DNA from: Prasinococcaceae sp. CCMP 1430
Taxonomy: Eukaryota; Plantae; Prasinodermophyta
Assembly: GCA_013416795.1 (NCBI GenBank)
Contig: RQSC01000033.1
Coordinates: forward strand, 228,027-247,424
Length of the DNA: 19,398 bases
Direction: 5' to 3'
Of the stretch, positions 96 through 18,732 are shown one piece after another. The translations under genes and the position numbers were made by a program. Every line of letters starts with the position of its first letter. The stretch's first letter is position 1. The notes below the pieces were generated by a model that saw only the letters and a program-made list of their open reading frames with translations, was not told where the DNA came from and did not search any database.

Positions 96-248
96 GAGTC
101 TGCGCGCGCGCGCACGCACACACGCGCGACGAGCGCGCACACGCGCGCGCCGAATCGAATCTGCGAGTGCGCGCGTGCGCGCCGTCGGCGCCACTTCTCG
201 CGCGCTGCACGCGCGCGCGCGCGCGCACACACACCGCCTCGGGCCACC

Positions 249-491
249 ATGGCGGAGGTCACCCTCGACCCCGCCATCCGCTCGTGGGTGCTGTTGCCCA
301 TCACCTTCGTGATGCTCCTCATCGGGTTGTTGAGGCACCTCGTGATGCAGCTCACCAAGGCCGAGCCAAAGGTCGACGCCGACGCCGCGCGCGAGGCGCA
401 GACGGTCGCGCGCGCGGCGAGGCTGCGCGCCAACGGCGTCTTCCTGCCCGCGGCGGGGTACGCCGCCAGGAAGGCCTACTTCGCGCACAAG
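249..491 (+). CDS. EMC3: ER membrane protein complex subunit 3 (EMC3/TMEM111), first exon only; the rest is probably inside the gap
   Basis: MAEVTLDPAIRSWVLLPITFVMLLIGLLRHLV...ARLRANGVFLPAAGYAARKAYF matches the EMC3 N-terminus (LDxxIRxWVLxP plus TM helix). Start context is gccaccATGG. It ends at an AAG|GTGCGC donor (phase 0). No downstream EMC3 sequence is recognisable in any frame. Confidence 0.85.
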
Positions 492-528
492 GTGCGCGTG
501 CGTGTGCGTGTGCGTGTGCGTGTCCGCG
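492..528 (+). other. 5' part of EMC3 intron 1, containing (GCGTGT)4 at 500-523
   Basis: GTGCGC donor, identical to the PDS donor. A low-complexity repeat runs into the N gap. Confidence 0.75.
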
Positions 529-628
529 NNNNNNNNNNNNNNNNNNNNNNNNNNNNNNNNNNNNNNNNNNNNNNNNNNNNNNNNNNNNNNNNNNNNNNNN
601 NNNNNNNNNNNNNNNNNNNNNNNNNNNN
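529..628. other. Assembly gap of exactly 100 N (probably an unknown-size placeholder)
   Basis: N run. The round length suggests a placeholder, and the missing part of EMC3 (roughly 170 aa from recall) cannot fit in 100 nt. Confidence 0.9.
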
Positions 629-647
629 CAGGCGCGGGCGAGTGGCG

Positions 648-3173
648 ATGGCACGACCAAGGCGCAGGAGCGCCCGCGCCGGCGACAAGCGCGCGGCGGC
701 GCCGCCGCAGGTGATCGACGCCGCGGCTGTCCCGGCAATGAGGGTCGCCGATCTGCGCGCGGCGCTCTCCGCGCGCGGGCTGCCGATGGAAGGCGTGAAG
801 GCGCAACTCGCACAGAGGCTCGCTGAGGCGCTCGCGGCGGAGAGCCCTGGTGCCGCCGCGGCTCCAGCGGATGGGGCGCCGCCTGAATGCGGTCCGGTCG
901 CCGAGGCGCCAGCTCGTGACGCCCAGACGCGGCTCGGCGCGCGCAAGCACGCGGAGCTGCGCCAGATGTGCGCCGACCGCGGGCTTAAGACTTCGGGAAG
1001 CAAGGCCACGCTTGCGGAGCGTCTCGCGGAGGATCTCGGAGCGGCGGGCACGGGCGAAGCGCGCGTGAGCGCTGACGAGGAGGGTCGTGGGCGGGAGCAG
1101 GTCGAGCAGCAGCGGGAGAGTGAGCCTGACCGGGATGGCGCCCAGGCCGCCGATGAGGACAGCGGCGCCGCTGCTACCGCCATCGCGCTCGACGTGTCCA
1201 AGCTCAAGGTGACCGAGCTGCGCGCCGCACTGAGCAGCCGCGGCCTGGACAGCAAGGGGCTCAAGGCTGCGCTCGTGGTGCGGCTGCGCGAGGCCCTCGT
1301 GAAGGAGGCCGGGAAGGACGCGCCAGCCCCGATGGTGGAAAGCGGAGACGATGACGTGGGCCAGGATGAGGATGAGGACGAGCAGCCAAGCCCCGACGAC
1401 CTAACGGCATCGGCGCAGACGCTGACCAGCGCCACGGGAGCGGCGTACTGGCGCCGCCTCTGCCCGCACCTCAGCGTTGATGGAGAGTCCGAGGGAGACT
1501 CCGCGCCAGCTGCTACGGCGGCGGCGCAGGTCGACCTCAGCGACGAGGCCGCGCACGCGATCGCAACTGAGATCCTGAGCAATGGCTTCGCGCGCGTGGG
1601 TGACATGGCCGGCGCGGATGTGTCGCTGCCCACTGGCCAGCTCCCACACGTGTCTGCCCTTGCAGATGGCGTGCACGCGGTGGTGGATGCCGGTTGGCCA
1701 GCCAGCTTCGTGCTCATGTATGATGAGGCGTGGGCGATGCTGCGCGCGGCGAGCGCGATCGTGGAGCGCGCGAGCGGCGGTCGCCTGAGCTGCAACCTTG
1801 ACAGTCTCGCGTGGCGCGTGGACGCTGCGAAGGGCGAGGCGGGCTTCGCGCCGCATCGCGACAGGCAACCCGACAACGCGGGGGACTTCTTTTTCGAGGC
1901 TGACGACTTCCCGAAGTATGCAACCCTGTGGGTCGCGCTCACCGACGTGACGCCCGCCGGTGGATGCTTGTACGCCGTCCCCAAGGATGCCGACCCCGGC
2001 TACGCTAGCGGCGACCCTGTGGTGGACAACACCACCCGTGGCCTGCCGATGGCGTTGCGCCGCGCGCTGCCCTCGAAGGAGAGCCTACAGATGATTGCCG
2101 CTCTGCCTGTGCCGGCGGGCTCGGCGGTGGCGTTCTCTGGCCGATCCATCCACTGGGGCTCGGCCGGCTACGGGCTCCACCCACCGCCACGCATCGCCAT
2201 CAGCTTCGGCTGCTCTGATGCGGACTTCGAGGCGCCATACCTCAAGGGCGCAGGTGGATCTCTCGCCTCGACTGCCGAGCCGCCGCCGCCGAGCGTGCGT
2301 CTAGCGCTGGCCGCTGCGCAGACGCTTGTGTACCACCAGCGCTTCCCGCAGGATGCGGGCATGCTCTCGCTGTGCACTGAGGCGTTCAATCGCCATGCGG
2401 ACGACTTCGACGAGCGCTACGCCACCAAGGTGCGCGCCGAGCTTGTGGAGGCCGTCAAGGAGGCCGTTGAGAACGCGGAGGAGCTCGGCGAGGAGGTCGA
2501 GGAGCTGCTGATGGACAGGGCGCTTGACGGTGTGCTCGAGGCCAAGGGCGACGAGCTGCTGCAATTCCGCGATGACTTTGACGAGATGGAGGCGGACGGT
2601 GACAGCGAAGGGGAGCAAAGTGAGGACTACGACGATTACGACGTCTGTGTTGACTCCGACGGCGAGGATGACGAAGACGAGGAGGTCCTGCGCGCGGTGT
2701 CCAAGCGCACTCGAAACGCGCTCGATTCTCTGGACATGATGATGATGGATGAGGGCGACAGCGAGGATTCGGACGGCGAGGAGGACGACGAAGCCCAGCG
2801 CGCCGCCCTGTCCAGGCGAACTCGCCACGCACTCGACCTGGTGGACGAGATCATGGAAGACGAGGAGGAAGGCGATTCGGACGAAGAAGATGACGAGGAC
2901 GGAGATGATTACGAGGAGGACGATGAGGGTGTGGACACAGGGCACGTCGCGATCGACACCAACGGCGAGCTGAGCCACTACTCCGACCAGGACCGTCGCT
3001 CGCCGCTGGCCGCGCGTGTGCCGCTGTGGCACCCCAGGCAGCGGCTCTACATGTCCAAGGTAGGCAGGCTAGGGCGCTTCCTGTCGCGTGCGCACCGATG
3101 CCACGCGCTGCTGGATCGCAGGAAGGAACAGGCTGCCATTTTCGACGCCATATTCTCGCAATCGAGGCGGTGA
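648..3173 (+). CDS. Uncharacterised ~841-aa protein: three SAP motifs, PhyH-like 2OG/Fe(II) dioxygenase domain, long acidic C-terminus (start uncertain)
   Basis: SAP-like motifs at ~729-833 (MRVADLRAALSARGLPMEGVKAQLAQRL), ~933-1037 (KHAELRQMCADRGLKTSGSKATLAERL) and ~1194-1298 (LKVTELRAALSSRGLDSKGLKAALVVRL). PhyH-type motifs are PHRD (H1854, D1860), TLWVALTDVTPAGGCLYAVP, VPAGSAVAFSGRSIHWGS (H2151) and RIAISF (R2190). The ORF is open without gaps from 629 to TGA 3171-3173. ATG648 is the first ATG after the gap. Confidence 0.8.
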   Translation: MARPRRRSARAGDKRAAAPPQVIDAAAVPAMRVADLRAALSARGLPMEGVKAQLAQRLAEALAAESPGAAAAPADGAPPECGPVAEAPARDAQTRLGARKHAELRQMCADRGLKTSGSKATLAERLAEDLGAAGTGEARVSADEEGRGREQVEQQRESEPDRDGAQAADEDSGAAATAIALDVSKLKVTELRAALSSRGLDSKGLKAALVVRLREALVKEAGKDAPAPMVESGDDDVGQDEDEDEQPSPDDLTASAQTLTSATGAAYWRRLCPHLSVDGESEGDSAPAATAAAQVDLSDEAAHAIATEILSNGFARVGDMAGADVSLPTGQLPHVSALADGVHAVVDAGWPASFVLMYDEAWAMLRAASAIVERASGGRLSCNLDSLAWRVDAAKGEAGFAPHRDRQPDNAGDFFFEADDFPKYATLWVALTDVTPAGGCLYAVPKDADPGYASGDPVVDNTTRGLPMALRRALPSKESLQMIAALPVPAGSAVAFSGRSIHWGSAGYGLHPPPRIAISFGCSDADFEAPYLKGAGGSLASTAEPPPPSVRLALAAAQTLVYHQRFPQDAGMLSLCTEAFNRHADDFDERYATKVRAELVEAVKEAVENAEELGEEVEELLMDRALDGVLEAKGDELLQFRDDFDEMEADGDSEGEQSEDYDDYDVCVDSDGEDDEDEEVLRAVSKRTRNALDSLDMMMMDEGDSEDSDGEEDDEAQRAALSRRTRHALDLVDEIMEDEEEGDSDEEDDEDGDDYEEDDEGVDTGHVAIDTNGELSHYSDQDRRSPLAARVPLWHPRQRLYMSKVGRLGRFLSRAHRCHALLDRRKEQAAIFDAIFSQSRR

Positions 3174-3382
3174 CGAATTGGGCGACTGGTGGTAAGAAAT
3201 GCAAACGCGAATTCGGACCGTCCCCGCGCAGCCCTCATGACAGGCGACCGCGCGGCTCGGCGCCCCCTCAGTCGGCCATTCCCACCTGCAGTCAATTACT
3301 TTTCGCGCGGTGACCTCACCCCGCACCACGCTCATCCGCCAGGCTCAGGTGGCACCGCAGCCCGAAGTGCTGCGGCCTGCCA

Positions 3383-6300
3383 TCAATCGGCCATGCCTTC
3401 GTTGATCTCCGAGGGCTTCACCATCCCCGGAATCGCCAGTGCCTTTTGTCGCGCAGCCTCCGCCTCACGCGCGGCCTCCTCTGCATAAAGGTCGCTGTTG
3501 TTCGTCGCAGAGAACTCCTTGGTCTGCACGAGGAAGTCGCGCAGGTGGTTCTTGAATTGCGGCAGGTCCGCCTTGAGATGCGAGAGCCCTGCAACGAATG
3601 TTCCGACCTGCGCGGGCTGCATGTTGGGGAAGGACGTCACGAGCAACGCCTGCGCGCGCTTGGAGACGTACTCCGAGTTGCTTGGGAACTGGCCCTCCGA
3701 GGCATCCCACAGAGGCATGTTCAGCACTGGGCTCTCCGCGAGCGTGAACATGTGCTGCAGGATGAGTGCGTGCAGCTTAAACCCGGGCTTGTGGAAGGTG
3801 TCGGTAAGCACGCTGAAAATCTCCGTGAGCACTGGCATGTAGAACGCCTTGTAGAAGGGCATGGCGTGCGCCGACTTGGCGAACGAGCGCAGCAGCTCCA
3901 GCAGCAGGTTGAGCCCGGTCTCCGCGACGTTGCGCTCCGTGTGGCGGATGGCCCAGACGATGGAGTCCATCACAAGCTTTAGCTGCGACTCGTCGAGGCG
4001 AAGCAGGGTGTCGAAGCAGTTGTTGGCGATCGCGCGCAGCAACGAGAAGAACTTGAGCCGGTGGTCGGGGAAGTCCTCGAAGTTGCGCGTGATCATCTGC
4101 AGCGTGGGGTCGAACACAGCCTCGAATATGCGCGGCACGTGGCTGGTCACCTCGCCCTGGAGCCGCTCAACGATCGTGGCGAAGAGGGAGAGCACCTCGG
4201 CGTCGCGTGCGTCTGGCACGGAGCGTGCGTAGTCGCCCAGGATTGGATCCAGCATCTCCGGCACGAACTGCTGCCCGACGACCGCGCAGTCCTCCGCGCG
4301 CTCCACAAAGCACTCGATCAGCCTGAGCACCTCCTTCTTGACTGACCGCAGCAGCTTCACGATGGACGTGCGTGTGGCGTGCTGGCCGCCAGACGCAACC
4401 TGCGCCGACACGAGCTCCGAGTACAGCTTGTACACGTGAAGCATGTCGACAAAGATGAGCTGCAGCTGCGTGACGAATGGCTGGCCGAGGCTCGTGCAGA
4501 CGCCAACGTTGGTGCGCAGGATGTTCGCCAGATTCTTGATGACATTGGGGTCCTTGAGCACCTCCACGTTCGTCCGCGCTTGCCTGATGATCTGCGCCCA
4601 CGTGACGTTTGGGGGGTCCATCAAGCGCAGCAGGTACTGGTCTCTCCTCGCCTGGTCGCTCTCCGACTGCACCATCTGCCCGATCGCTTCGTAGAAGACG
4701 TGCACCTGCGCCGGCTCCAGGTCGCAGATGATTGGCTGCAGGTTGGACAGCAGCTCGTTCAAGAAAGGCTGCTGCTCGCCCATCTGCAGGATGACGAAAT
4801 TCCTCTTGCACTTCTGCGCGATTTTGAGCAGCGTGTCGACGGCCATGTCCTGCACGCCCGGATGCGACTCATGCATGAATTCGAACAGCTTGTTGACCAC
4901 CGTGCGCAGGAACTTCCAGTGCGCGCGCAAGAAGCGCGGGTACTGGCCCACCACGTACATGATGTTCGACGCGATCACCGCCTTGTGGGGCTTGCCGCGC
5001 GTCTTCTCACACAGGTTGAGCAGATCGCGGATGACGGTGACGAGGAAACGATTCTCCTGGTCTTCCGCCATGGACCCCGAAATGGATCCGATGGCCCAGC
5101 ACAGCGTGTTGAGATTGTTCCAGCTCCACTCGGTGCCGTTGAGCTGCAGCGACAGCTTGCCGATCATTTGCTGCTCGGTGTCGTCGTGGTCCAGGTGGCT
5201 CAAAAACACGAGGGTCTCCTTCATGGTCTTGTACTGCATGAGCACGTCGTTATCCTTGAGTGTCTCGCGCACAATGTTGCCGTTCTCATCCTCAACGATC
5301 AGGATCTCCTCGGGCTTTGCCATGCGCGAGATCATCAGCAGGCGCAGCTTGCTCATCGGCGCGGCGAAGAGCGTGCGCTCGGCCGCGGCCTTGGCGGCGT
5401 CGGCGCCTTGCTCCGAACGGAACGCGAACGGGCTCTCCACGTTCGGGGCGCTCGACACGCACTCCAGCTGGAAGAGGTCGCACACCAGCGAGTTCCAGTA
5501 GTCAAGGCACACCTTGAATACCTCGTCGTCGTCGATGTATGACAACTTGATCAGGTACTCGAGGCCCGTCAGGAGCAGCTGCTGGCCGGCCTGGTCCCCC
5601 TTGAGCAGACGGATGTGAGCGCGGAAAAAGCCCGCCAGGAAGAGCGCCAGGTTCTGCAGGAATGCCTGCTCTTCGTCCGTGCCATTCTCGTACGCCTCGG
5701 GGATGTTCGCGGACGGCGGTACGATGGCTTGTAGCTGCTGGACGAACACCATGTACATCTTCACGAAGTGCTGGTTGTAGTAATCGCCGACCACCAACGA
5801 GCCGATCTCGGTCAGGCACTGCAGCGCCGGGTTGCGCAGCGCTGGCTGCGGCAGTAGCCGCAGCAGAGACTCGAGCAGCTGCGACTCGAAGATGTAGCCC
5901 AGCGGGATCCAGCCCAGGAAGACGCGCAGGGTCTCCAGGGTGGCGCGCAGGAGCTCCAGCCGCTGCGAGTGCGTGAGCACCAGCTCGCACAACTCGTGGA
6001 TGAGCGCAAACTCGTTGTTGAGCGAGTTTTTCATCTCCTTGATCTTCGTCTGCGTCATTTCGCCACGCGAGAAGTCAAACACCTCCTCCGACAGCAGCTT
6101 GAGAAGCCCCATGGTATTTTCGCAGAGTGTCTCGCTCGTCTTGGACGCCCCAGTGATGTCCGCGATGAAGGTCGGCCAGTTGTGCGGCCACTCGTGCTTG
6201 AGCACCGCCACCAGCGTCAGATTGAGCTTTTGCAGCAGCGTGCGCGACGCGCGAAAGACCGCCTCGTCCGCGCTGAGCTTTATGATCATGTTGGAGAGGT

Positions 6301-6592
6301 AGTTCTTGATGCCGTCGCGCTGCTCCGCGGGCATCGTTGCCCAGCGATACTTGATCTGTCGCTCGAGGATCTGCAAGCCGTAGTACTTGGTGTCCGCATC
6401 CTGCGCCCCCTCGAGGATCGCATCCACCCGCGTCCACGCGTCTGGGTGCTCGCTTAACTGCTTGAGGGCCGCCTCGGCGGTAGCGCGCTCCGTCGGGTCC
6501 GCGCTGCGGTAGAACGCATTCACCGTGCTGTCAAGCAGCGAGACGTTGAAGGGCTGGCTGAAGTCGAGGAGCGCCTCGGCAGGGGATGCCAT
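3383..6592 (-). CDS. XPO1: Exportin-1 (CRM1), intronless, 1069 aa
   Basis: Hallmark segments WNNLNTLCWAIGSISGSM, DLLNLCE, ASNIMYVVGQYPRFLRAHWKFL, NKLFEFMHE, FKNHLRDFLVQTKEF, plus an importin-beta N-terminal region. Start context is gacgccATGG. Confidence 0.98.
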   Translation of the reverse strand: MASPAEALLDFSQPFNVSLLDSTVNAFYRSADPTERATAEAALKQLSEHPDAWTRVDAILEGAQDADTKYYGLQILERQIKYRWATMPAEQRDGIKNYLSNMIIKLSADEAVFRASRTLLQKLNLTLVAVLKHEWPHNWPTFIADITGASKTSETLCENTMGLLKLLSEEVFDFSRGEMTQTKIKEMKNSLNNEFALIHELCELVLTHSQRLELLRATLETLRVFLGWIPLGYIFESQLLESLLRLLPQPALRNPALQCLTEIGSLVVGDYYNQHFVKMYMVFVQQLQAIVPPSANIPEAYENGTDEEQAFLQNLALFLAGFFRAHIRLLKGDQAGQQLLLTGLEYLIKLSYIDDDEVFKVCLDYWNSLVCDLFQLECVSSAPNVESPFAFRSEQGADAAKAAAERTLFAAPMSKLRLLMISRMAKPEEILIVEDENGNIVRETLKDNDVLMQYKTMKETLVFLSHLDHDDTEQQMIGKLSLQLNGTEWSWNNLNTLCWAIGSISGSMAEDQENRFLVTVIRDLLNLCEKTRGKPHKAVIASNIMYVVGQYPRFLRAHWKFLRTVVNKLFEFMHESHPGVQDMAVDTLLKIAQKCKRNFVILQMGEQQPFLNELLSNLQPIICDLEPAQVHVFYEAIGQMVQSESDQARRDQYLLRLMDPPNVTWAQIIRQARTNVEVLKDPNVIKNLANILRTNVGVCTSLGQPFVTQLQLIFVDMLHVYKLYSELVSAQVASGGQHATRTSIVKLLRSVKKEVLRLIECFVERAEDCAVVGQQFVPEMLDPILGDYARSVPDARDAEVLSLFATIVERLQGEVTSHVPRIFEAVFDPTLQMITRNFEDFPDHRLKFFSLLRAIANNCFDTLLRLDESQLKLVMDSIVWAIRHTERNVAETGLNLLLELLRSFAKSAHAMPFYKAFYMPVLTEIFSVLTDTFHKPGFKLHALILQHMFTLAESPVLNMPLWDASEGQFPSNSEYVSKRAQALLVTSFPNMQPAQVGTFVAGLSHLKADLPQFKNHLRDFLVQTKEFSATNNSDLYAEEAAREAEAARQKALAIPGMVKPSEINEGMAD

Positions 6593-7028
6593 GGCGTCGG
6601 GCTAAGTGTACGCGGTGATCGATCCTCCACGCGCTCGCGCCGTGGCGTGGGGTTGCGGCTGCGCGGCCCACCACCCGCGCCCGCTCCGCCGGCGGCCGCT
6701 GGGTTGGCGTCCGCGCAAGCCGAGCGGACGCTCCTCGCGTCGGCTGATCGCCTCCACGCCCGCGCAGCGCCACCGCGTCGCCTCCCCCACCCCTTCCCCC
6801 ACCCCCGTACCCTGAGGAGGCGCAGAGGCACACCCCCGCACGCGACAGCGTACACACTTCGCGCGGCGGTCCCGCTCGCGACCCGGGCGCCGCGAGAAGC
6901 GCACGAGGGGACAGAGGGGGCGGGCGACCGGGGGAGGGGGACGGCGAGTGCGCGCTCCCCGCAGCGGCCGAACCAAAAAAAAGCGGGCGGGACGGCCGCA
7001 CGCCGCAGCGGCCGGCGGCAGCGATGCC
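6593..7028. promoter_or_regulatory. Putative bidirectional promoter / 5' UTRs shared by XPO1 and PurM, with G-tract clusters at 6784-6806 (-) and 6907-6940 (+)
   Basis: 436 bp between divergent start codons. C-tracts on the left, G-tracts on the right, and an A8 tract at 6975-6982. Confidence 0.55.
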
Positions 7029-7167
7029 ATGACTTACAAGGGCGCCGGCGTTGACATCGATGCAGGGGCGGAGCTGGTACGCCGCATTGCGGCTGCGTGC
7101 CCCGGCGTGGGTGGATTCGGAGGTCTGTTCCCGTTCGGCGATTCGTATCTCGTCGCCGGCACTGATG
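7029..7167 (+). CDS. purM: Phosphoribosylformylglycinamidine cyclo-ligase (AIR synthase), exon 1
   Basis: MTYKGAGVDIDAGAELVRRIA...GGFGGLFPFGDSYLVAGTDG, plant-type short N-terminal loop. Ends at a G|GTGCGT donor (phase 1). Confidence 0.93.
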
Positions 7168-7303
7168 GTGCGTGCTTGGCGCCTGAGGCGGCGCCGCACG
7201 CTGCGCCGCCAGCCGCATGCTGCGTTGCATGCTGACTCCCCCCTTCCGCTGCGCGCCCCCCTGCTCGCGCCGACCTTTGCACACACGCGCCCATACATGC
7301 CAG
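7168..7303 (+). other. Spliceosomal intron in purM (136 nt)
   Basis: GTGCGT...GCTGAC (7231-7236, branch-like)...CAG. Removal restores the invariant GTDGVGTK motif and gives a 975-nt CDS (324 aa). Confidence 0.93.
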
Positions 7304-8139
7304 GCGTCGGCACTAAGCTCAAGCTCGCTTTTGACATGGACAAGCACGACACCATCGGCCAGGACCTGGTGGCGATGAGCGTGAACGACATCGTGACTCT
7401 CGGCGCGGCGCCGATGTTCTTCCTTGACTACTTCGCCACCTCCAAGCTGGACGTCGACCAAGCCGAGGCGGTGATTGTCGGCATCGTGCGCGCATGCGAG
7501 GAGAGCGGCTGTGCACTTCTCGGTGGCGAGACCGCGGAGATGCCGGGGTTCTACTCGGACGGCGAATACGACCTGTCGGGCTTCGCCGTGGGCTCTGTCA
7601 AGAAGGACAAGGTGGTGGATGGCAAGCGCGTCCTGGCGGGCGATGTGCTCGTTGGACTGCCGTCGACCGGCGTGCACTCCAACGGCTTCTCGCTCGTGCG
7701 GCGCATTCTGGAGCGATCGGGCATGTCGCTCGCTGATCCGCTCCCCACGGACCCCTCGCGCAGCATTGGCGACGCGCTGCTCGCGCCGACCGCGCTTTAC
7801 GTCAAGCCCGTGCTGAGCGCCCTGGATGCGTTCGACGTGCGCGCCCTCTGCCACGTGACGGGCGGCGGGTTCACAGAGAACCTGCCGCGGGTCATGCCAG
7901 ATGGCCTCGGCTGCTCGGTGACCCGCGGCTCGTGGGCCAGCCTGCCCGTTTTTGAGTGGATTCAGCAGGCCGGAAGCGTCGAGGAGGAGGAGATGCTGCG
8001 CACCTTCAACTGCGGGGTGGGCATGGTCATGGTGATGCCAGCGGCGGACGCGCAGAGGTGCATCGAGGGTCCCGACGCCATGCCGGGTGCCACCATAATA
8101 GGCTCGGTGGTGGAGGGCGAGGGGGTCGTGTACGTGTAG
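7304..8139 (+). CDS. purM: AIR synthase, exon 2
   Basis: GVGTKLKLAF, DLVAMSVNDI, FFLDYFA, LLGGETAEMPG, GVHSNGFSLVR, HVTGGGF, MLRTFNCGVGMV; TAG at 8137-8139. Confidence 0.96.
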
Positions 8140-8296
8140 GCGCGGCGCGCATTGTCGGCACTGCGCGCCCCAAGCATGGTCGCGGCAGCGGGGCAATCGA
8201 AGACCATAGTAACAAAGGAACATTCCTACGCATGAGGTACGCTCCCTCGGATATTGATACAGATTCGGGGCCTCTTTCAGAGCTGAGCCGACCAGC

Positions 8297-10147
8297 CTAG
8301 TCGGCGCGGCCCGCTCCGCCTACGACGCGGCTGAACGCCTTTTGCAGGGCTGAGAGCGGACCTTGCGGCGGCGCCGCGCCCCCCTTGCCCCCACTGGTAG
8401 TCGCTTTGACCACCTTGCGGGCGATGGTCGCGGCGAGCCCCTGGCGGCCCTCCGGCAGCTTCCCCGCGTCCTCAAAGTACTCGAGATCGGCTTCCGTGAA
8501 GCCGCCACCCTTGCTGGTGCCAGCCTTGGACAGGAACGTGGCGAGCGCATCCGACTCCGAATCGCCGCCGCCCTCGGCGCGCCACTGACGCCACTTCTTG
8601 CTCGCCTGCTGCGCGGGCCGCAAGATCGGGCTCGTGCTGACGTACGGGTGGCTGAGCGCGCCGTTCGCGTCCAAGCGCAGGTCGGTGCGCACAGTGATCA
8701 GCCTCCGCAGCATCGCGTATGCCTCCCCACCGTCCAGGTCGAGCATGTCGAGCCCCTCCTGATACTCCCTCTGACGGCCCGACTTTTTGATCTCCTTCCC
8801 CTCGCGCATGGCACGGCGCCAGCGGTCCAGGTTGTACGCATACGCCTGGACGGCCTTGTTCCACTTGATGAGCGCGTCGGTGGATTTGAGGTTGGGAAAG
8901 GAGAGCTGCGCCATCGTGACCCCCACGCAGTACATGTCGAAGCGATCGGGGCGCTCGAGCTGCCACAGGATGGGCGAGAGGCCGGCCGCGATCGCCGGCG
9001 GCGGCGGCTCTGGCGTGAGCGTGCTCATGATGAACTGCTCGGGCGGCGCATAGCGCGGGTCCAGCAGAAACTCGTTGGGCGCATAGTTGATGCCCACGCG
9101 CAGGTCGGCTGCGGCGCCCAGGTCGATCAGCTTGAGGCGCGCCGAGCCGGGCCGCCCGTCTCCCTTCGAGATGATGATGTTTTGAGGCTTGATGTCCCTG
9201 TGCACGAGGCCGACGCTGTGCAGCGTTTTCGCCGCTGCCAGCAGCTGCCTCATGAGCTCCTTGACGACGGCGGACCGCCGCGCCGCTGCAGGCTCGCCCT
9301 CGAGCGACTTGCCCAGAAGCGGCACCTCGAGGCAGCCCGGGAAGTCCTTGCGCCGCATGTACGTACACAGCGTGTCGTCGCCCTCGTACTTCCACGCGAG
9401 CCACGTCTGTTCCTTTCCGTCGGCACCCTCTTCGCGGAAAGACCCCAGGTACTTCGCGAATCCCGAACTGTCGGGCAGGCGCGAGACGCGGCCGTTCATC
9501 CAGGTCTCCTCCGCACCATAGTCGTCCGCGCGCTTGAGCACGACGTCCTCCACATCGGCACCCGCGCGGACGCAGGTCCCGCGGTACACCTCGCCGAACG
9601 CGCCCCTGCCAAGTTGTTCCCCGATCTCGAAGTCGCGCAGCCGGTAGGCCGGGCTGATCGCGCGCTGCAACGCGCGGACAAAGTACGTGTCGATGAATCC
9701 CCACAACACGCCCGGCGTGGCGAGCGTGTACGCCAGCACGGCTGCGAGGAGGGCCTTGCCCTGCAACGTGAGCCCGCCCACCTCCTTGCGCAGTTCGAGG
9801 TCGAGCGTCGAGCGGTACGTGATGTCGCCGCAGTCGGTAATCGCGCACTGCGGCCCAATGCCCTCGGCGAGCGATCCCACGGCCGCGTTGAGCGCATGAT
9901 GCGTCGCCTCGGCCGCGTGCGCCACCTCGGCAGGCGACACGCCCGCCGCGCGCGCCGGCGCGCGCCGCGCTCCNNNNNNNNNNNNNNNNNNNNNNNNNNN
10001 NNNNNNNNNNNNNNNNNNNNNNNNNNNNNNNNNNNNNNNNNNNNNNNNNNNNNNNNNNNNNNNNNNNNNNNNNNNNNNNNNNNNNNNNNNNNNNNNNNNN
10101 NNCGCGCCGCCCGCCGCCCGCGCCGCGCGCGCCGCTCGCGCCCCCAT
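8297..10147 (-). CDS. STN7: Thylakoid state-transition Ser/Thr kinase STN7/Stt7 (transit peptide interrupted by a 129-N gap at 9974-10102; start tentative)
   Basis: Lumenal CAITDCGDITYRSTL (Cys at 9845-9847 and 9830-9832), TM helix followed by ATPG, LGRGAFGEVY, HRDIKPQN, IDLGAAADLRVGINY, LLDPRYAPPEQFIMST, LSPILWQLERPDRFD. The Ala/Arg-rich N-terminus from ATG 10147 stays in frame across the gap. Confidence 0.9.
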   Translation of the reverse strand: MGARAARAARAAGGAXXXXXXXXXXXXXXXXXXXXXXXXXXXXXXXXXXXXXXXXXXXGARRAPARAAGVSPAEVAHAAEATHHALNAAVGSLAEGIGPQCAITDCGDITYRSTLDLELRKEVGGLTLQGKALLAAVLAYTLATPGVLWGFIDTYFVRALQRAISPAYRLRDFEIGEQLGRGAFGEVYRGTCVRAGADVEDVVLKRADDYGAEETWMNGRVSRLPDSSGFAKYLGSFREEGADGKEQTWLAWKYEGDDTLCTYMRRKDFPGCLEVPLLGKSLEGEPAAARRSAVVKELMRQLLAAAKTLHSVGLVHRDIKPQNIIISKGDGRPGSARLKLIDLGAAADLRVGINYAPNEFLLDPRYAPPEQFIMSTLTPEPPPPAIAAGLSPILWQLERPDRFDMYCVGVTMAQLSFPNLKSTDALIKWNKAVQAYAYNLDRWRRAMREGKEIKKSGRQREYQEGLDMLDLDGGEAYAMLRRLITVRTDLRLDANGALSHPYVSTSPILRPAQQASKKWRQWRAEGGGDSESDALATFLSKAGTSKGGGFTEADLEYFEDAGKLPEGRQGLAATIARKVVKATTSGGKGGAAPPQGPLSALQKAFSRVVGGAGRAD

Positions 10148-10625
10148 CAATCCAAGTGCCCTCTCGCACCTCCCGGGTCTGAACCGCGGGGGTTGGGAAC
10201 GATACCCCAGTCTATCCGATGCGATCCGGAGAACGAAACCGCGCTGCGAGGTCTTGACCGGGTTGAAGATTCTCTTCGGACGCCTCGGCCTCGGGCGCGC
10301 GGGTCGCCGGGCCGGGCGCCGGCGTGGGTCTAACCTTAAATACGATTGGGTTTTGGGCAGCCCTGTTTCCTCCCTTCCTCCCTCTCGAGCAGCAGTGCTC
10401 GGCGTGCTCCGCTCCCTCGCATTTTGCTCTGGCACTGGGGAGTGCAGGTTGGATGGGCGGAGGGAGCGCTGCGCGGCGCCGGGCGATTCAGATTCGCGCG
10501 CGGGCGCCGCTCGCGGATCGCGCCATCAAATCCAAGGCGGTCGCCGACGCCGCCGTGCGCGCGCGCGCCCGCGTGCGGGCGCGCCCGAACCCAAACGACG
10601 ACCAAACGTCGTTTGAAATGTGCTG

Positions 10626-10634
10626 TAAACCCTA
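10626..10634 (+). promoter_or_regulatory. Telo-box-like element (TAAACCCTA) in the STN7/PDS divergent region
   Basis: Exact AAACCCTA at 10627-10634, with a near-copy TAACCCTTA ~10 nt downstream. A single short motif could arise by chance. Confidence 0.25.
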
Positions 10635-10703
10635 TGCGAGGTCGTAACCCTTATCTATTTTCCCGGGCGTGCCGCGGGCGGCCCCCCCGCCCCGCGCGCG
10701 CCC

Positions 10704-10902
10704 NNNNNNNNNNNNNNNNNNNNNNNNNNNNNNNNNNNNNNNNNNNNNNNNNNNNNNNNNNNNNNNNNNNNNNNNNNNNNNNNNNNNNNNNNNNNNNNNN
10801 NNNNNNNNNNNNNNNNNNNNNNNNNNNNNNNNNNNNNNNNNNNNNNNNNNNNNNNNNNNNNNNNNNNNNNNNNNNNNNNNNNNNNNNNNNNNNNNNNNNN
10901 NN
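10704..10902. other. Assembly gap (199 N), probably containing the PDS start and part of its transit peptide
   Basis: N run. The sequence right after it reads [16 protein letters not shown] in the PDS frame. Confidence 0.8.
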
Positions 10903-10904
10903 CG

Positions 10905-11412
<508 letters not shown>

Positions 11413-12903
11413 GTGAGCGCGTGGCAGGACGAGGACGGCGACTGGATCGAGACTGGCCTGCACATCTTCTTCGGCGCCTACCCCAACATGATGAACCTCT
11501 TCGAGGAACTCGACATCGAGGACAGGCTGCAGTGGAAGACGCACAAGATGATCTTCGCCATGCAGGAGCTGCCCGGTGAGTTCACCACCTTCGACTTCGT
11601 TGAGGGCATTCCCGCGCCGCTCAACTTTGGCCTGGCTATCCTGCTCAACCAGAAGATGCTCACGCTCGCGGAGAAGCTGCAGACCGCGCCGCCGCTGTTG
11701 CCCATGCTCATCGAGGGACAGGACTTCATCGACGAGCAAGACGAGCTCTCGGTCCTTGATTTCATGCGCAAGTACGGCATGCCCGAGCGCATCAACGAGG
11801 AGGTTTTCATCTCGATGGCCAAGGCGCTCGACTTTATCGACCCCGACAAGCTCTCCATGACTGTGGTGCTCACGGCCATGAACCGCTTCCTCAACGAGAC
11901 CGACGGCCTGCAGATGGCCTTCCTGGACGGCAACCAGCCCGACCGCCTGTGCGAGCCAATGAAGCAGCACATCGAGGCGCGCGGCGGCGAGGTGCGCACG
12001 AGCGCCCCCCTGAAGCGCTTCGTGCTCAACGATGACGGCAGCGTGAAGCACCTGGAGATGCGCTCGGGCGACATCGTCGAGGCCGACGAGTACATCTCCG
12101 CGCTGCCCGTCGACGTCTTCAAGCGCATGCTGCCCAAGGACTGGGCCAACATGCCGTACTTCCGCCAGGTGGACCAGCTCGAGGGCATTCCGGTGATCAA
12201 CATTCACCTGTGGTTCGACAAGAAGCTCACCTCGGCGGACCACCTCACGTTCTCGCGCTCGCCGCTCCTGTCCGTGTACGCCGACATGTCCACCTGTTGC
12301 AAGGAGTACTACGACGAGGAGAAGTCGATGCTTGAGCTCGTGTTCGCGCCGTGCTCGCCCATCGCTGGCGGCAAGACCAACTGGATCGCGAAGAGCAACG
12401 AGGAGATCGTTGACGCGACCATGAAGGAGCTCGAGAGGCTCTTCCCCACCGAGATTGGCCCCAAGGCGCCCGGCGGCGGCGCCAAGCTCATCAAGCACGC
12501 CGTCGTCAAGACGCCGCGCAGCGTCTACGCAGCCATCCCGGGGCGCAACAAGTATCGCCCCTCGCAAACCACGCCCATCAGCAACTTCACGCTGGCGGGC
12601 GACTGGACGTCGCAGAAGTTCCTGGGTTCGATGGAGGGTGCGGTGCTTGCGGGCAAGCTGGCCGCCGAGGTCGTCGCCGACAAGGCGGCCTACGGCGCGC
12701 CTACGCGTGGCATGAAGCCCATCCGCGAGGAGGTCATCAGCGCCGCGAAGAAGCACGAGGCCAAGGAGCCCGTCGGGTGCAACGGCGACTCGCCTATCGC
12801 CTACGGTGCGGGCATGGTGCTCGACAAGAAGGGCAAGGGCGAGCTGCGGGAGCAGGACAGCGTGCAGCTCGCGGACGACGCCGCGCTGGCCATCTCATCG
12901 TGA
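11413..12903 (+). CDS. PDS: 15-cis-phytoene desaturase, exon 2
   Basis: VSAWQDEDGDWIETGLHIFFGAYPN, MNRFL, MAFLDG, FSRSPLLSVYADMS, LAGDWTSQKFLGSMEGAVLAGKLAA; TGA at 12901-12903. Confidence 0.97.
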   Translation: MSAWQDEDGDWIETGLHIFFGAYPNMMNLFEELDIEDRLQWKTHKMIFAMQELPGEFTTFDFVEGIPAPLNFGLAILLNQKMLTLAEKLQTAPPLLPMLIEGQDFIDEQDELSVLDFMRKYGMPERINEEVFISMAKALDFIDPDKLSMTVVLTAMNRFLNETDGLQMAFLDGNQPDRLCEPMKQHIEARGGEVRTSAPLKRFVLNDDGSVKHLEMRSGDIVEADEYISALPVDVFKRMLPKDWANMPYFRQVDQLEGIPVINIHLWFDKKLTSADHLTFSRSPLLSVYADMSTCCKEYYDEEKSMLELVFAPCSPIAGGKTNWIAKSNEEIVDATMKELERLFPTEIGPKAPGGGAKLIKHAVVKTPRSVYAAIPGRNKYRPSQTTPISNFTLAGDWTSQKFLGSMEGAVLAGKLAAEVVADKAAYGAPTRGMKPIREEVISAAKKHEAKEPVGCNGDSPIAYGAGMVLDKKGKGELREQDSVQLADDAALAISS

Positions 12904-12975: not shown

Positions 12976-13743
12976 TCAGCCCTTGACGACCCTCCGCCCC
13001 GGCGCTGGCCACGGGAGCAGCGCGCCCGGCACATGCCGCAGGCACGCGGGGTTGGGGACGAGCATCCATGCGCGCTTGCAATACTCACCAAAGTTGGCGT
13101 ATCGGCTTAGCCGTGCGTCTTTCTTGACCATGTTCGGGTAGAAGAGGATGCACCACACGATGGAGTGGGACACCCATGGGATCCAGCTTCCAGACAAAGA
13201 GGCGAACGACCCATATATGAGGATCTCACCCAAGTAGTTTGGATTGCGAGTGTACGCGAAGAAGCCCTCGGTGATGAGCTCGCGATTGGCCTTGTACCGC
13301 AGCGTGTAGAACTTCTGGCAGTCCGAGCCGAAGTGAAGAAACACGCCCGCGGTGTACGCGCCGACAGTCAGTGCCATGCGCTGCGCGCTGAGCGTTGGTG
13401 TTGAAAGACCGATGCACCACGGCGAGAGCAGGTAAGCGGTGCTCAGAAATACGAACGTCATCAGGCCGCCGGCGAGGGTTGTCGGCACCTGCCACGCGGC
13501 GTCGGGATACGCGATGTCCTTGGCGAGCCACATGAATCCATAGCCACCGTGCAAAGCGACATAGAGCGAAGCGACGGGATTGGTGGCAACGTTCACCCCG
13601 AGCAACTTGAGGATGCCGTAGGCGAACAGCCCCACCAGGCCCTTGTGCATGTTCACCCATTTCCCCACTGGCACACCGCCCTCGGACGCACTGCCATAGA
13701 TGAGCCCGTCATTCAGCCTCGCGAGCGCCAATGCCAAGCCCAT
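12976..13743 (-). CDS. DUF1295 / steroid 5-alpha-reductase-ICMT-like integral membrane protein, 255 aa, intronless
   Basis: Several hydrophobic helices, YVALHGGYGFMWLAKD..YPD, HFGSDCQKF, LITEGFFAYTRNPNYLGEILIY, NMVKKDARLSRY. Start context is gccATGG at 13743. Confidence 0.8.
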   Translation of the reverse strand: MGLALALARLNDGLIYGSASEGGVPVGKWVNMHKGLVGLFAYGILKLLGVNVATNPVASLYVALHGGYGFMWLAKDIAYPDAAWQVPTTLAGGLMTFVFLSTAYLLSPWCIGLSTPTLSAQRMALTVGAYTAGVFLHFGSDCQKFYTLRYKANRELITEGFFAYTRNPNYLGEILIYGSFASLSGSWIPWVSHSIVWCILFYPNMVKKDARLSRYANFGEYCKRAWMLVPNPACLRHVPGALLPWPAPGRRVVKG

Positions 13744-14324
13744 GGCCACGCGCTGGGGCACGAGCGCGCCCACCGCGCAGCGAGGCGTATCCTCGCGTCG
13801 GGCGCGAGCGCGCGGTGTGGCACGCGCCGCGCAGTACAAGTGCGCGGGTTGTTTCGGATTTTCCGCTGATTCAAACACGATACCATGCCCCCCAAAAAAA
13901 AAAAAAAAAGGTGTTCGCGTCAAATGCGCGCCGCGAGGGCGCCGCCGCGTGGCAACCCCCATCAAACCCCCTCCGTTCGGACTCTCCCGTTTCCCCTTTT
14001 TTGAAGTTTTTTTTAAAAGCCTGCACCTTCGCTTGTGTCACATGGTCCCACATGAGATTGAGATGCCACACAATTGCATGCACACGGCTTGAACGGGCAG
14101 GAACGGGAGCCCAGACGCCCGAACGGCTGCGTGTGGGTGCGGGGGCGATGCGTTTTGACGTAGCGGCACAGTACGTCACTCCTCATGTGCGCATGCGCTG
14201 TGACCTCGACGGGGCGCTCTCTGTCGCCCCTCCTTGCATTTTGTTGGCATTTTGGTGGTGTTGGATCGTATCAAAGCCCGTTGGAAAGTGCAGCGTTTCG
14301 AAATTGGGCTGGGAGGGTGATATT

Positions 14325-14660: not shown

Positions 14661-14816
14661 CTTTGGCCCAGGCGCGGCTGGCTCGCGGCGCGGCGCGCCG
14701 TAGACACCTGCTGCGCGGGGAGCGCGGTTTCTTAAAAATGGCAAATGGCAGGCGCGTGCCCTCGCGTAGGGTATCCACGGCGCGAGGTCTCAAGGTCGCC
14801 TCCAGCCGGGGGCACC

Positions 14817-17800
14817 CTAGAGGATCCCGAGGATTCGCCTCCGGCGCGTGGGCGTGTCGTCGTTGCCCGCGCTCGATGCAGTCATGCCCTTCGCCCCATC
14901 GCCCTGCAGCTTCTGCCTGAGCTCCTCATAGCGGGCGAGCTCGTCCATCGACAGCGACGGCGCGAGCGTCTGCAGCGACATGTTGAAGTCCGCCTCGGTC
15001 ACCTCGACCACGGTAGGTTTGCCCTTCTTGCCCTTGCCCTTGGAACCCTTGGCCGCGCCATTGGCCTTCGCGGGCGAGGGCTTGGCAGGGCTGGCGCCGC
15101 CGTCCACGAAGATGTCCTCCTCGGCGGCGCCGCCCAGGCCACCCAGGCCACCCAGCCCGCCCAGGCCAGCGCCGAGCCCAGCGACCGACCCGGGCGTGCC
15201 GCCTGCCGCCGCAGCCTTGCCTTGCTTCATCGCCTGGCTCTCGGCGCGGCTGCTCAGCCCGGCCGTGCGCTTGGCAGCCTGCATCCAGCTGTCCGCACAC
15301 AGTGCGTACATGTCCGCACCGGTGAAGGTGGGCGGACACTGCGCAGCGACGCGCTCGAGCGAGGTCCCCGGAGCGAGGTTGAACTTGCGCGTGAGGGCCT
15401 CGAGCACCTTCATGCGCGCGGGGACGTCCGAAGCGATCGACACGTAGGCGAGCTTGTCGAAGCGCCCGGGGCGCAGCAGCGCTGGGTCGACAAGGTCGGG
15501 CCGGTTGGTCGCGCCCACGATGAAGATGTCCGTGGATGCGCCCGCATCCAGGCCGTCCAGCTCGGCGAGCAGCTGCGAGACGACGCGGTCCATCACGCCA
15601 CCGCTGTCCGCGCCACCGCCGCGGCTGGGCGCCAGCGCGTCGAGCTCGTCGAAGAACATCACGCACGGCCGCGCGCGCCGCGCGCGCTCGAAAACCTCGC
15701 GCACGTTCTTCTCGGACTCGCCGATGTACATGTTCACCAGCTCGGGGCCCTTCACAGAGAGGAAGTTGAGGCCGCACTCGGTTGCGACGGCCTTCGCGAC
15801 GAGCGTCTTGCCGGTACCCGGCGGGCCGTAGAGCAGCACGCCAGAGCGCGCCTGGAGCCCGCTGGCGAAGAGCTCCGGGTGCTGGAGCGGCAGCTGCACG
15901 GTGTCGAGGATGGTCGCCTTGACATCCTCGAGGCCTCCCACGTCCTCCCACTTGACGTTGGGGACCTTGGGCGCGCCGAGCGCGGCGTTCTGCCGCTGCT
16001 TCGCGCGCTTCATAGCGCCGTCGAGCCCGCCGCCAGCCTCGATGGTCAGCTCGGCACCCCTGGCACGCGCGGCATTGGCGTCCTGTGCGACGACGCGGAG
16101 GTCGCGCTGGTTCATGCCAGCCGTCTGCGCCGCCGCCTCCTTGATGGCAGCCTGCTCCGCCTTGGAGAGCGGCTTGGCGGCCTTGCTGGCCGGCGCGCCG
16201 GCGCTGAGGAAGCCGCGCATGGGAGCGGGCTTGGCGTCCTTGATGGCAGCCTCAAGGTGGTGCTTGAGGACGGCCTCGCGCTGCGCCTGGTCGGGCGTCT
16301 CCACCTTGATCTGATGGGTGAAAATGCGACGAAGCGCCTTCGGGATTGGCTCCAGCTCGTCGGCGGTGGCCACGAGCAGCACCGACTTGTTTGCGAGCGC
16401 CGCGGCGCCTCCCTCGGCCAGCGCCTCGTCCATCTCGAACTCATCGGCCGGGCCTGCGTCGGCGGCGGTGCCGCCCGCGCCGCCCTCGGCGGCGGCGGCG
16501 GCGCCCTCGGGCGCCGGCGGCGGCTCGCGGTACGAGTCGAGCACAGTGCCGAGCACCTCATGCCTGAAGCACGCGATGACGCGCGCGCCAAGGTTGGCGT
16601 CCTGCGTCGGCTGGCCCGACGCGCCCGCGGGCGGCACGAGCGCGTGGAAGCGCCGCAGGAGCAGCATGCACGGCGCGAAGTCGCGCGCCTCCTCGAAGAC
16701 CTCGTGCATGGCCTTTGCGGTGGCGGCGTCGTTCTGGCCGACCAGCTCGTGGCAATTGAACGCGAGCACGGGCAGACCCACGGCGGCACCGGCCGCGATG
16801 GCCGTGATCCGCTTGCCAACGCCCGCGCCGCCCGTGAGCAGCACGCTCGCGCGCAGATTGAGCGGCGCGGCGCCGCCGTGCACGGCGGGCGCCATAATGG
16901 TCGCCAGACGACGCCACGGCAGGCCCGACACGTCGGCGTGAGCCTGCAAGCGGCCCATCGGATCGGCGGCGGCGACCGACTGCGCGGTGGTGGGCGCGCG
17001 CGCCACCGCGTCGAAGCCCTTGAGCATGGGCGGCACCGGCGCGGTGTCATCGCCGACCAGCAGCAGCGTCGTGCGCTCGTTGTCCGCCTGGTAGTAGGAG
17101 CCGTCGCCGCCCTCGCCGGCGCCCGCGCCCTCGTCGTCGTAGTCATCGTAGTCATCGTCCTCGTCCCCGCCACCGGTCTTGGGGCCCTGGATGCTCTGCA
17201 CGATGAAGGTGTGAGCCTCGCGCTGCGGCGGGGGATCGAACGAGCACGGCGCGCGCACGGTGCGCGGCGCGCGCGCCGTGAACACGTCGCCAACCTGCAC
17301 GAGGCGCGGCACGGCAAAGTGCGCGTGCAGCGCCGCGCTGAGCTCCTCCTCCTCCTCCTCGGCCGCGTCCTCCGGCAGCGCCTCCGCGCGACTGAACGAG
17401 AACTCCGAAGTCGGCAGGCGCGCCTGCACCACGCGCACGACCGACGCGACGCTAACTCCCGCCGTCGCTGCCTTGCGCCACTGCGCGAACGAGGTGCCGC
17501 CGGATCCCTCCCCACCGGCGACCTCGAGTGCCTTGGACTCGTGGCGCTTGATCGTCACCGTGGGCGCGCTGGTGAGGCCGCCCAGGTACTCGCTCAGGTG
17601 CAGGTGCAGCCCCAGGTTGTGCGCGAGCGTCGGCGCGAGCGACGCGGCACCCACGCCGCCCTTTGCCCCCGGCGCCGCGGCGGCGGCCGCCGACGGCGGC
17701 TTGCCCTGAGCGACGGCGCGCGCGAGGCGCGTCACGCCCGTGCTGGACGCCTTGACCTCGACCACCGCACCGTTGACCACCTCGAGCGCCCGAAGCGCCT

Positions 17801-17933: not shown

Positions 17934-18732
17934 NNNNNNNNNNNNNNNNNNNNNGCAGCCGCCGCCGCGAGGGCTTTTTGCGCGGCCGGCCGCCGATCCG
18001 CCCCGCGCCCCGGCGCGCGCGCGCCTGCGTTTTGACCTACTTTGGGTCTCGTCCCCAATCAGGGTTCACATGTGATGGTGGCGCGCACCCCGCAACGCGC
18101 GCGCGGCGCGCCGGCGACTTCCAACCCCAAACCTCGCGCGCTGCGACTCACGCCGCCATCACATCACATCGCACGACGCGCAGCCCATAATACACCAGAC
18201 CCTCTCGGAGCGCACGACAAAACGGGAGGCGCGGCGCCGTCCGATGGCACCGATGGATGCCATCGGCAGAAATTAAAATTTCACTCCTTTTTCGCAGCCA
18301 CGAGTACGCAAACTGGCCATGTTTGTGCATGCGCGAGGCCAGCGCCGAAGCGCTTTTCGGCCGCCGCGAGCGAGTTGCGATTCGCGCGAGCGGAGCGACG
18401 CGCGGAGTCGCCCCGTCGATCGATCGACGAACGCCGCTGCCGATGGGAGGGTTGGCTCCCTCCGCGCGCGCGCCGGGAGCGCGCGACCGCGGGCGCCCAT
18501 GTTTTCGCGGGGTCCGCGACGCGTGCAACGCGCGCGCGCGCGGACCCCGATCGCGATCCGATTCGGTCGGGCGCGCGCGCGCGCGCGCGCGCCCCCGCTG
18601 CGCGCCGACGCGGGATCGTTTTTCCGGGTTTAGGTTTCGGTGAGGAACGCGTGCACGCGGGTGTTTTGTTTGGGGTTGGGATGGAATGGGTTGCCATCCA
18701 TCATCCAGCCAGCCGGGTGTACACTCACCCAC

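Follow-up and report, generated by a model that had tools for sequence, protein, structure and literature searches.

Results

A single-exon gene joins SAP motifs to an oxygenase domain

The DNA examined here (the window) is a stretch of 19,398 nucleotides (nt) from contig RQSC01000033.1 of the Prasinococcaceae sp. CCMP 1430 assembly, and it carries a gene whose 841-amino-acid (aa) product combines three SAP motifs, a PhyH-type 2-oxoglutarate (2OG)/Fe(II) oxygenase domain and a long acidic tail. A first-pass annotation had proposed that all of these parts lie in a single open frame, and frame +3 is indeed open from ATG648 to the stop codon at 3171-3173. The product corresponds to PRCOL_00004520 of Prasinoderma coloniale, as evident by the fact that EukProt entry EP00793 PRCOL_00004520-RA falls in the same 90%-identity protein cluster. 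We conclude that this is a real, expressed, single-exon and nuclear-encoded gene of P. coloniale, a green picoalga of the Prasinodermophyta. Its features are listed below, with the strand in parentheses.

529..628 (no strand): assembly gap of 100 N, hiding the promoter and the transcript start, and ending 20 nt before ATG648
629..3222 (+): mRNA seen in a transcriptome contig (contig alignment), unspliced, with a 5′ untranslated region of at least 37 nt (18 of them inside the assembly gap) and poly(A) after 3222
648..3173 (+): coding sequence, 841 aa plus stop, PRCOL_00004520 (open reading frame listing, alignment to the public model)
654..677 (+): basic patch RPRRRSAR, resembling a nuclear localization signal (NLS), not conserved in the sister ortholog (translation, alignment)
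729..833 (+): SAP motif 1, aa 28-62, 36.1 bits against a cut-off of 23.9
933..1037 (+): SAP motif 2, aa 96-130, 38.6 bits against the same cut-off
1194..1298 (+): SAP motif 3, aa 183-217, 47.5 bits against the same cut-off
1299..1442 (+): acidic linker, aa 218-265, net charge -12 (composition)
1443..2483 (+): PhyH-type 2OG/Fe(II) oxygenase domain with helical C-terminal extension, aa 266-612 (Pfam, alignments, AlphaFold2 model)
1446-1466 (+): subfamily signature YWxxLCP
1695-1733 (+): subfamily signature WPASFxLxYDExW
1854-1874 (+): subfamily signature HRDRQPD
1854..1862 (+): H403-R-D405, the iron-binding HxD (CAT-CGC-GAC), invariant in relatives
1992-2003 (+): subfamily signature DPGY
2151-2162 (+): subfamily signature HWGS
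2151..2153 (+): H502, the distal iron-binding His, invariant in relatives
2187-2210 (+): subfamily signature PRIxxSFG
2190..2192 (+): R515, the inferred binder of the 2OG C5 carboxylate, invariant in relatives
2484..2969 (+): acidic tail, aa 613-774, 44% D/E, net charge -60 (composition)
2490..2582 (+): tail signature matching the family consensus, an acidic amphipathic helix EEVEELLMDRALDGVLEA (aa 615-632; 2490-2543) followed by FRDDFD (aa 640-645; 2565-2582)
2700-2726 and 2811-2837 (+): two S(K/R)RTRxALD repeats in the acidic tail, one such repeat being present in the sister ortholog
2970..3170 (+): basic C-terminal module of 67 aa, aa 775-841, net charge +10; it is also conserved in the sister ortholog (50% identical) and lacks a Pfam match

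The evidence for transcription consists of assembled contigs. One contig of 2620 nt, from a small run of 2015 whose RNA label is a guess made by the search tool, spans 629-3222 with no gaps or joints and carries a loose end AAAAAAAA behind position 3222. The poly(A) end and the gene-by-gene contigs of this run are consistent with a transcriptome, and the adjoining EMC3 (242-486, then elsewhere) and CRM1 (from 3275) genes are each represented by contigs of their own. Because the 18 extra letters that precede position 629 contain no ATG, ATG648 is the first AUG of the transcript. Two marine metatranscriptome contigs cover 1049-3216 and 2314-3151, both unbroken. The first-pass annotation had called for a check that the SAP and oxygenase parts share a transcript; since the contig covering 629-3222 is unbroken and ends in poly(A), the SAP motifs, the enzyme and the tail do reside on one unspliced, polyadenylated mRNA.

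The public gene model of 744 aa begins at Met31 (position 738) and removes an in-frame GT..AG stretch at 2841-3041 as an intron. This stretch is retained in all transcript contigs covering the gene (three of three), and its removal would delete residues that are conserved in a sister ortholog, including GELSHY...VP.WHP. We therefore take the intron to be spurious, and the public model is corrected here with respect to both its wrong start and this splice.

Two longer forms of the protein were also rejected. An open reading frame (ORF) of 974 aa at 249-3173 is an artefact in which an EMC3 exon is read through the 100-N gap, as evident by the fact that an EMC3/TMCO1 exon (51.9 bits) accounts for its first 93 residues and that the EMC3 transcript resides on a separate contig. 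A database form of 854 aa starts with an ‘M’ that a prokaryotic gene caller assigned to a GTG, with no upstream in-frame ATG. A Tara metagenome scaffold that is 99% identical to the gene and spans the gap likewise has no in-frame ATG 5′ of ATG648.

Relative to this scaffold, the gene carries seven amino-acid changes, none of which is within a SAP motif. Three synonymous changes and one non-synonymous change fall in the catalytic domain, and such strain differences are too few for a selection test. Upstream of the gene, the scaffold (600-1250) differs strongly from the window (100-628), holds an AT-rich stretch that is unusual for a genome of 65-70% GC, and has no EMC3 exon. Either the gap conceals more than 600 bp or the strains differ structurally at this location.

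The proximity of the assembly gap, 20 nt upstream, and the merging of the EMC3 exon through the run of N by the ORF tool raise the concern that two genes were joined by an assembly or annotation artefact. However, the gap lies outside the coding sequence, one poly(A)-tailed contig spans all parts, and the same architecture is present in independent metagenome scaffolds and in 35 member sequences of two protein clusters. An artefact is already contradicted by these observations and is scarcely credible.

Three canonical SAP motifs precede the enzyme

The Pfam profile PF02037 matches the 841-aa product in three stretches with a total of 96.6 bits (E 4.7e-28). These are the three SAP motifs marked at the same positions by the first-pass annotation, and each exceeds the Pfam cut-off when scanned separately. 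With three canonical 35-residue motifs, the protein resembles SAF-A/hnRNPU, PIAS/Siz1, Ku70, Acinus and SARNP/Tho1, but in none of these is SAP joined to a 2OG oxygenase. The sister ortholog (718 aa, 50% identical) carries two SAP motifs and the PhyH domain, and has no counterpart of SAP motif 2 of the window protein. The basic patch RPRRRSAR, which had been noted just after ATG648 as a putative NLS, is present in the window; however, it is not kept in the sister ortholog and is omitted from the public model.

The oxygenase belongs to a distinct branch of the PhyH superfamily

The central domain matches PF05721 (PhyH) with 31.8 bits against a cut-off of 22, although the match is limited to profile positions 105-201 of 213. 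The earlier assignment of a PhyH-like domain with an HxD motif, a distal His and an Arg at these positions is thus borne out. H403, D405, H502 and R515 show no variation across alignments of 58-71 relatives, and R404, R406, Q407, P408, W503, G504 and several charged residues outside the triad are likewise invariant in these sequences. R515 follows the distal His at a distance of 13 residues, the spacing seen in PhyH enzymes, and by this position it is inferred to bind the 2OG C5 carboxylate. Because the HxD...H triad and the Arg that would hold 2OG are kept, the window protein is most likely an active Fe(II)/2OG oxygenase, as judged by its sequence.

An AlphaFold2 (AF2) model of the domain (pLDDT 89, pTM 0.91) and its structural matches reveal a PhyH-like double-stranded beta-helix as the catalytic core. 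The closest solved folds are SnoN/SnoK, ColD, the CurA and SyrB2 halogenases, AviO1, KanJ, MysH and a proline hydroxylase, with matches of the PhyH class reaching Foldseek E values of ~1e-8, TM scores of 0.4-0.6 and VIA Z scores of 14-15 at 12-22% identity. PHYHD1 and PhyH are also among the top matches, and human PhyH (2a1x) ranks below many bacterial enzymes (Z 12.0, 17% identity). A sequence search of the PDB yielded nothing close (SnoK only, E 0.58), an NCBIfam search gave no match, and a language-model atlas search returned only generic bacterial PhyH clusters. Orthology with PHYH/PAHX was also considered, but PHYH gave no sequence match in the PDB search and no PTS2-like N-terminus was seen by eye. 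Given that the fold neighbours are at 12-22% identity and that nothing in the PDB is close by sequence, the domain represents a distinct, uncharacterised branch of the PhyH superfamily and not an ortholog of phytanoyl-CoA hydroxylase.

The beta-helix fold, the HxD...H triad and the Arg after the distal His are shared with the PhyH family at large (phytanoyl-CoA 2-hydroxylase, PHYHD1, SnoK/SnoN, AviO1, KanJ, MysH, EctD and proline hydroxylases). The subfamily differs from these enzymes by its own signatures (YWxxLCP, WPASFxLxYDExW, HRDRQPD and DPGY..GD), by a helical C-terminal extension and by a tail bearing an acidic motif, and no member has been solved or characterised.

One further fold match is to a subunit of the trypanosome RNA-editing RESC complex (PDB 8fnc chain 14; Z 14.2 over 235 residues, 8% identity). 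Here a fold of the PhyH type is part of an RNA-binding complex, and the similarity is one of fold only.

The catalytic domain is old and widespread, and usually lacks SAP

An alignment search with the catalytic part recovered 75 proteins of ~400-600 aa from Volvox, Raphidocelis, Tetradesmus, Scenedesmus, Ulva, Chloropicon, Prymnesium, Polarella, a diatom and a MAST stramenopile. An exhaustive profile search of 1.84 billion cluster representatives gave 2325 matches at E<=1e-3, of which 686 were at E<=1e-30, and added Haematococcus, Vermistella (Amoebozoa), Leptophrys (Rhizaria) and Amoeboaphelidium (an aphelid) to the named members, which also include Chlamydomonas. The subfamily therefore extends across green algae, haptophytes, diatoms, dinoflagellates, Amoebozoa, Rhizaria and an aphelid. 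A fold search of the ESM-Atlas returned one cluster of 195 members (94% eukaryotic), and PF05721 matches 64 of 66 relatives.

The window protein carries every signature of this subfamily, namely YWxxLCP, WPASF, HRDRQP, DPGY..GD, HWGS and the tail motif AL.AMLDA...F.DDFD. Its catalytic domain therefore represents, in Prasinoderma, the ortholog within a eukaryotic PhyH subfamily that is old, widespread and uncharacterised. The enzyme part is no special invention dedicated to chromatin, given its membership in this large pan-eukaryotic group whose members normally lack SAP. A Prymnesium member bears the UniRef name ‘bifunctional lysine-specific demethylase and histidyl-hydroxylase’, and this name was set aside because no JmjC domain supports it. 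Profiles for TET/JBP, AlkB and JmjC matched neither the window protein, for which PhyH is the sole oxygenase family, nor the relatives scanned.

A word search with the whole protein retrieved its own cluster, the 718-aa sister, two green-algal proteins without SAP, and nothing else. A word search with the catalytic region (proteins of 462-1472 aa) retrieved only the two SAP clusters and Ulva, although its sensitivity is low and it is not proof of absence. No SAP motif was found in the other members scanned, in sets of 66, 10 and 30. The architecture is rare, and among the relatives listed SAP is confined to the window protein’s own cluster and one sister cluster.

A maximum-likelihood tree built from 58 catalytic domains pairs the window protein with the sister ortholog (support 100/99) and nests this pair with Ulva (97/95) inside a green-algal group; the remaining clades roughly track organismal lineages. 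Since SAP is confined, among the members scanned, to a Prasinoderma pair nested in the green-algal clade, the motifs are a derived N-terminal addition, two or three of them having been gained in the Prasinoderma lineage alone. The sister ortholog resides on GC-rich Tara contigs with different synteny, and so comes from another species of this lineage.

A conserved acidic helix and FxDDFD motif reside in the tail

The first-pass annotation had likened the acidic tail to those of histone chaperones. Its extreme acidity is not in doubt, but it is not a generic acidic run, because it carries a helix and an FxDDFD motif that are conserved in the family. The family consensus past the enzyme is D..AL.AMLDA...G...F.DDFD, in which no variation is seen at L630 and D642 and almost none at D643 and D645. 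A census of 99 complete-looking subfamily members reveals the aromatic-acidic motif in 69 and the helix motif in 66, and the tail is net-negative in 88% of the members (median -17). When the motif was included in an AF2 model, the helix reached pLDDT values of 72-83, with FRDDFD at ~57 and the remainder below 50. The prediction fits a short docking motif within a disordered tail.

Long acidic tails are known from HMGB1 and nucleoplasmin, acidic activation motifs of the VP16 type (DALDDFDLDML) are well described, and histone chaperones use D/E-F/Y motifs. The combination of a DNA-binding-type module with a long D/E tail in the window protein is similar to HMGB1 and nucleoplasmin by composition. 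The series ALDAMLDA ... FxDDFD is similar only in wording to the VP16-type and chaperone motifs, as judged by eye.

Basic clusters of the KKRKR type are located in the tail of 51 of the 99 members and in the last 30 residues of 34. For example, the tails end with ...KKPKLR in Chloropicon, ...KKRKRDV in the diatom and ...GKKRKR in Ulva, and volvocine members have long Lys/Ala-rich linkers. The stretch before the first conserved motif has a median length of only 29 residues, and therefore offers no room for a presequence. From the NLS-like clusters of the family, the absence of presequences and the acidic tails, we infer that the enzyme is probably nuclear. The nuclear setting put forward by the first-pass annotation thus seems plausible.

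These same data bear on whether the protein might instead be imported into plastids or mitochondria, where its SAP motifs would bind the organellar nucleoid and the Arg/Ala-rich first 30 residues would serve as a transit peptide. The N-terminus (MARPRRRSARAG...AAAPP) is rich in Arg, Ala and Ser, and SAP proteins are known from plastid nucleoids. However, the sister ortholog begins with an Ala/Pro-rich stretch that has a single basic residue, in 89 of the 99 members the domain is preceded by fewer than 60 residues, several members start with acidic residues, and half carry NLS-like clusters in the tail. Organellar import is quite improbable on this evidence.

Other fusions in the subfamily

Several relatives are fused to other domains. 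In a Tara genomic scaffold from a marine eukaryote of another lineage, a single ORF of 589 aa (1494-3263) joins a Mago-binding (PYM) motif at the N-terminus, which scores 49.3 bits (cut-off 20.6), to an oxygenase of the same subfamily, which keeps the acidic motif and an RRRKR cluster. Other partners are LRR, DnaJ, protein kinase, AMP-binding, FSH1 hydrolase plus MIF4G, and Amidohydro_2 (lactonase-like) domains. Because these partners are too mixed, no substrate can be named from the fusions, and a function inferred from them (LRR, DnaJ, kinase, AMP-binding, FSH1, MIF4G) was rejected. The Amidohydro_2 fusion was also considered as a sign of a pathway like that of thymine-7-hydroxylase and isoorotate decarboxylase. 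This was rejected as no decarboxylase matched; the best solved relative of the partner is 4dlf (E 1.8e-10), which we take to be a sugar lactonase.

An 869-aa protein from a Logan contig has tandem oxygenase domains, the first of which is without the iron-binding His (SRDRD). Possibly this first copy serves the intact second one as a pseudo-enzyme partner.

The Mago-binding fusion is also the principal evidence for a tether to messenger ribonucleoprotein particles (mRNPs), by which SAP would act as in SARNP/Tho1 or Acinus and the enzyme would modify a protein or RNA of nuclear mRNPs or of the exon-junction complex. SAP proteins participate in mRNP biology, the Mago-binding fusion is an independent, single-ORF case, and an aphelid gene model includes a MIF4G domain. 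However, only one fusion is clear, given that the MIF4G match is below its cut-off (27.5 against 30.8) and belongs to a spliced model that may merge neighbouring genes, and SAP is best known as a DNA binder. We regard this explanation as unlikely, although less so than organellar import.

Perhaps the enzyme hydroxylates a free amino acid, a lipid or another metabolite, with the tail and SAP motifs affecting only its location, solubility or regulation. Its top structural neighbours all act on small molecules, its Pfam family is PhyH, the fusion partners seen in relatives include a lactonase-like amidohydrolase, an AMP-binding enzyme and a serine hydrolase (FSH1), and JGI labels some members as ectoine-hydroxylase-related. 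Set against this are the low identity to such enzymes (12-22%, with the best PDB sequence match at E 0.58) and several attributes that would be unusual in a metabolic enzyme, namely the strict conservation of an acidic motif of the docking type, clusters that resemble an NLS, and tethers of the SAP or Mago-binding kind. Even the amidohydrolase fusion retains a KRKR cluster and the acidic motif. A small-molecule hydroxylase is a serious possibility, although we lean against it.

A possible nuclear, SAP-tethered oxygenase

The reading that we tentatively favor, with somewhat less than even confidence, is that the window protein is a nuclear, SAP-tethered oxygenase whose acidic motif docks on a basic partner and which hydroxylates a nuclear macromolecule, most likely a protein. 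The oxygenase would work in the nucleus, where the SAP array would hold it on DNA, or possibly on RNA or an mRNP. Its acidic motif would dock on a basic partner protein, and its core would hydroxylate a nuclear macromolecule, most likely at a protein side chain. The gain of SAP would have altered the place of action and not the chemistry. We count in favor of a tethered enzyme the fact that an independent lineage has placed a Mago-binding tether on the same oxygenase.

Several observations weigh against this proposal. Every one of the nearest solved structures (SnoK/SnoN, AviO1, KanJ, MysH and a proline hydroxylase) is an enzyme that tailors small molecules, whereas protein hydroxylases rank lower in the fold comparison (PHD2 Z 12.3, P4H Z 12.0). 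SAP motifs are known also from RNA-binding and organellar proteins. The fusions of the family are mixed and include the metabolic-looking Amidohydro_2, AMP-binding and FSH1 cases, the NLS-likeness of the basic clusters was judged by eye only, and the domain architecture was inspected for the best 150 of the 2325 relatives. In particular, the original proposal of a DNA, RNA or histone modifier is not supported by the present data.

A broader version of the proposal, which is possible but doubtful, holds that the whole subfamily consists of unrecognised nuclear oxygenases whose target is a macromolecule, either a nucleic acid or a basic nuclear protein modified at a side chain, with the invariant acidic helix and FxDDFD serving to dock and the SAP and Mago-binding tethers marking the place. 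What is known of PhyH-type oxygenases concerns small-molecule enzymes almost exclusively. If true, this version would define a new class of nuclear oxidative modification outside of the TET/JBP, AlkB and JmjC families, to which some lineages add explicit nucleic-acid or exon-junction tethers. No member is more informative than the Prasinoderma protein, since its SAP array indicates where a search should begin. Even with a metabolite as the substrate, a large unannotated family has been defined.

Our literature searches found no paper on a SAP and PhyH fusion, on nuclear PhyH proteins or on this subfamily. Where PhyH enzymes are mentioned in a 2010 survey of peptide-modifying dioxygenases, they belong solely to bacterial gene clusters (PMC2938197). 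In Chlamydomonas, fusions of SUMO to a 2OG-Fe(II) oxygenase of family PF03171 have been described (PMC7522501). These are similar to the window protein in combining an algal 2OG oxygenase with a nuclear-type module, but both the oxygenase family and the partner are different and the genes are unrelated. TET/JBP, AlkB, JmjC (e.g. JMJD6) and Chlamydomonas CMD1 enzymes share the cofactor chemistry, and their nuclear setting, targeting modules and charged tails offer a functional analogy only. The window enzyme is in a different superfamily branch from these, with no TET/JBP, AlkB or JmjC Pfam match. What is new is the combination of a known enzyme superfamily with a known DNA-binding motif, on an unannotated subfamily. 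From the sequences compared, the SAP-PhyH architecture is real and suggestive, and is restricted to one small lineage.

Neighbouring genes in the window

Upstream of the SAP-oxygenase gene, the first exon of an EMC3/TMCO1-family gene (249-528) ends at a GT beside a (GTGCGT)n repeat (498-521) and runs into the 100-N gap. Either the rest of this gene is located in the gap or the scaffold is misjoined, as transcript contigs continue elsewhere after position 486. Downstream, an intron-free exportin-1/CRM1 gene (3383-6592, minus strand; 1069 aa; CRM1_C 421 bits) is convergent with the SAP-oxygenase gene. Transcript contigs stop at 3222 and start at 3275, and the 3′ ends of the two genes are thus ~50 nt apart. 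Three further ORFs have Pfam matches:

8297-10435 (-): protein kinase ORF (Pfam match)
11413-12903 (+): flavin amine oxidase ORF (Pfam, 203.9 bits)
12976-13965 (-): steroid 5-alpha-reductase-like membrane protein ORF (Pfam match)

Long ORFs at 6520-8223 (minus strand) and 14745-18035 (plus strand) gave no Pfam match. The window begins with an (AC)47 microsatellite (1-94), and further assembly gaps in the form of N runs are located at 9974-10102, 10704-10902 and 17934-17954. A dip in GC content at 10001-11000 is due to the N runs.

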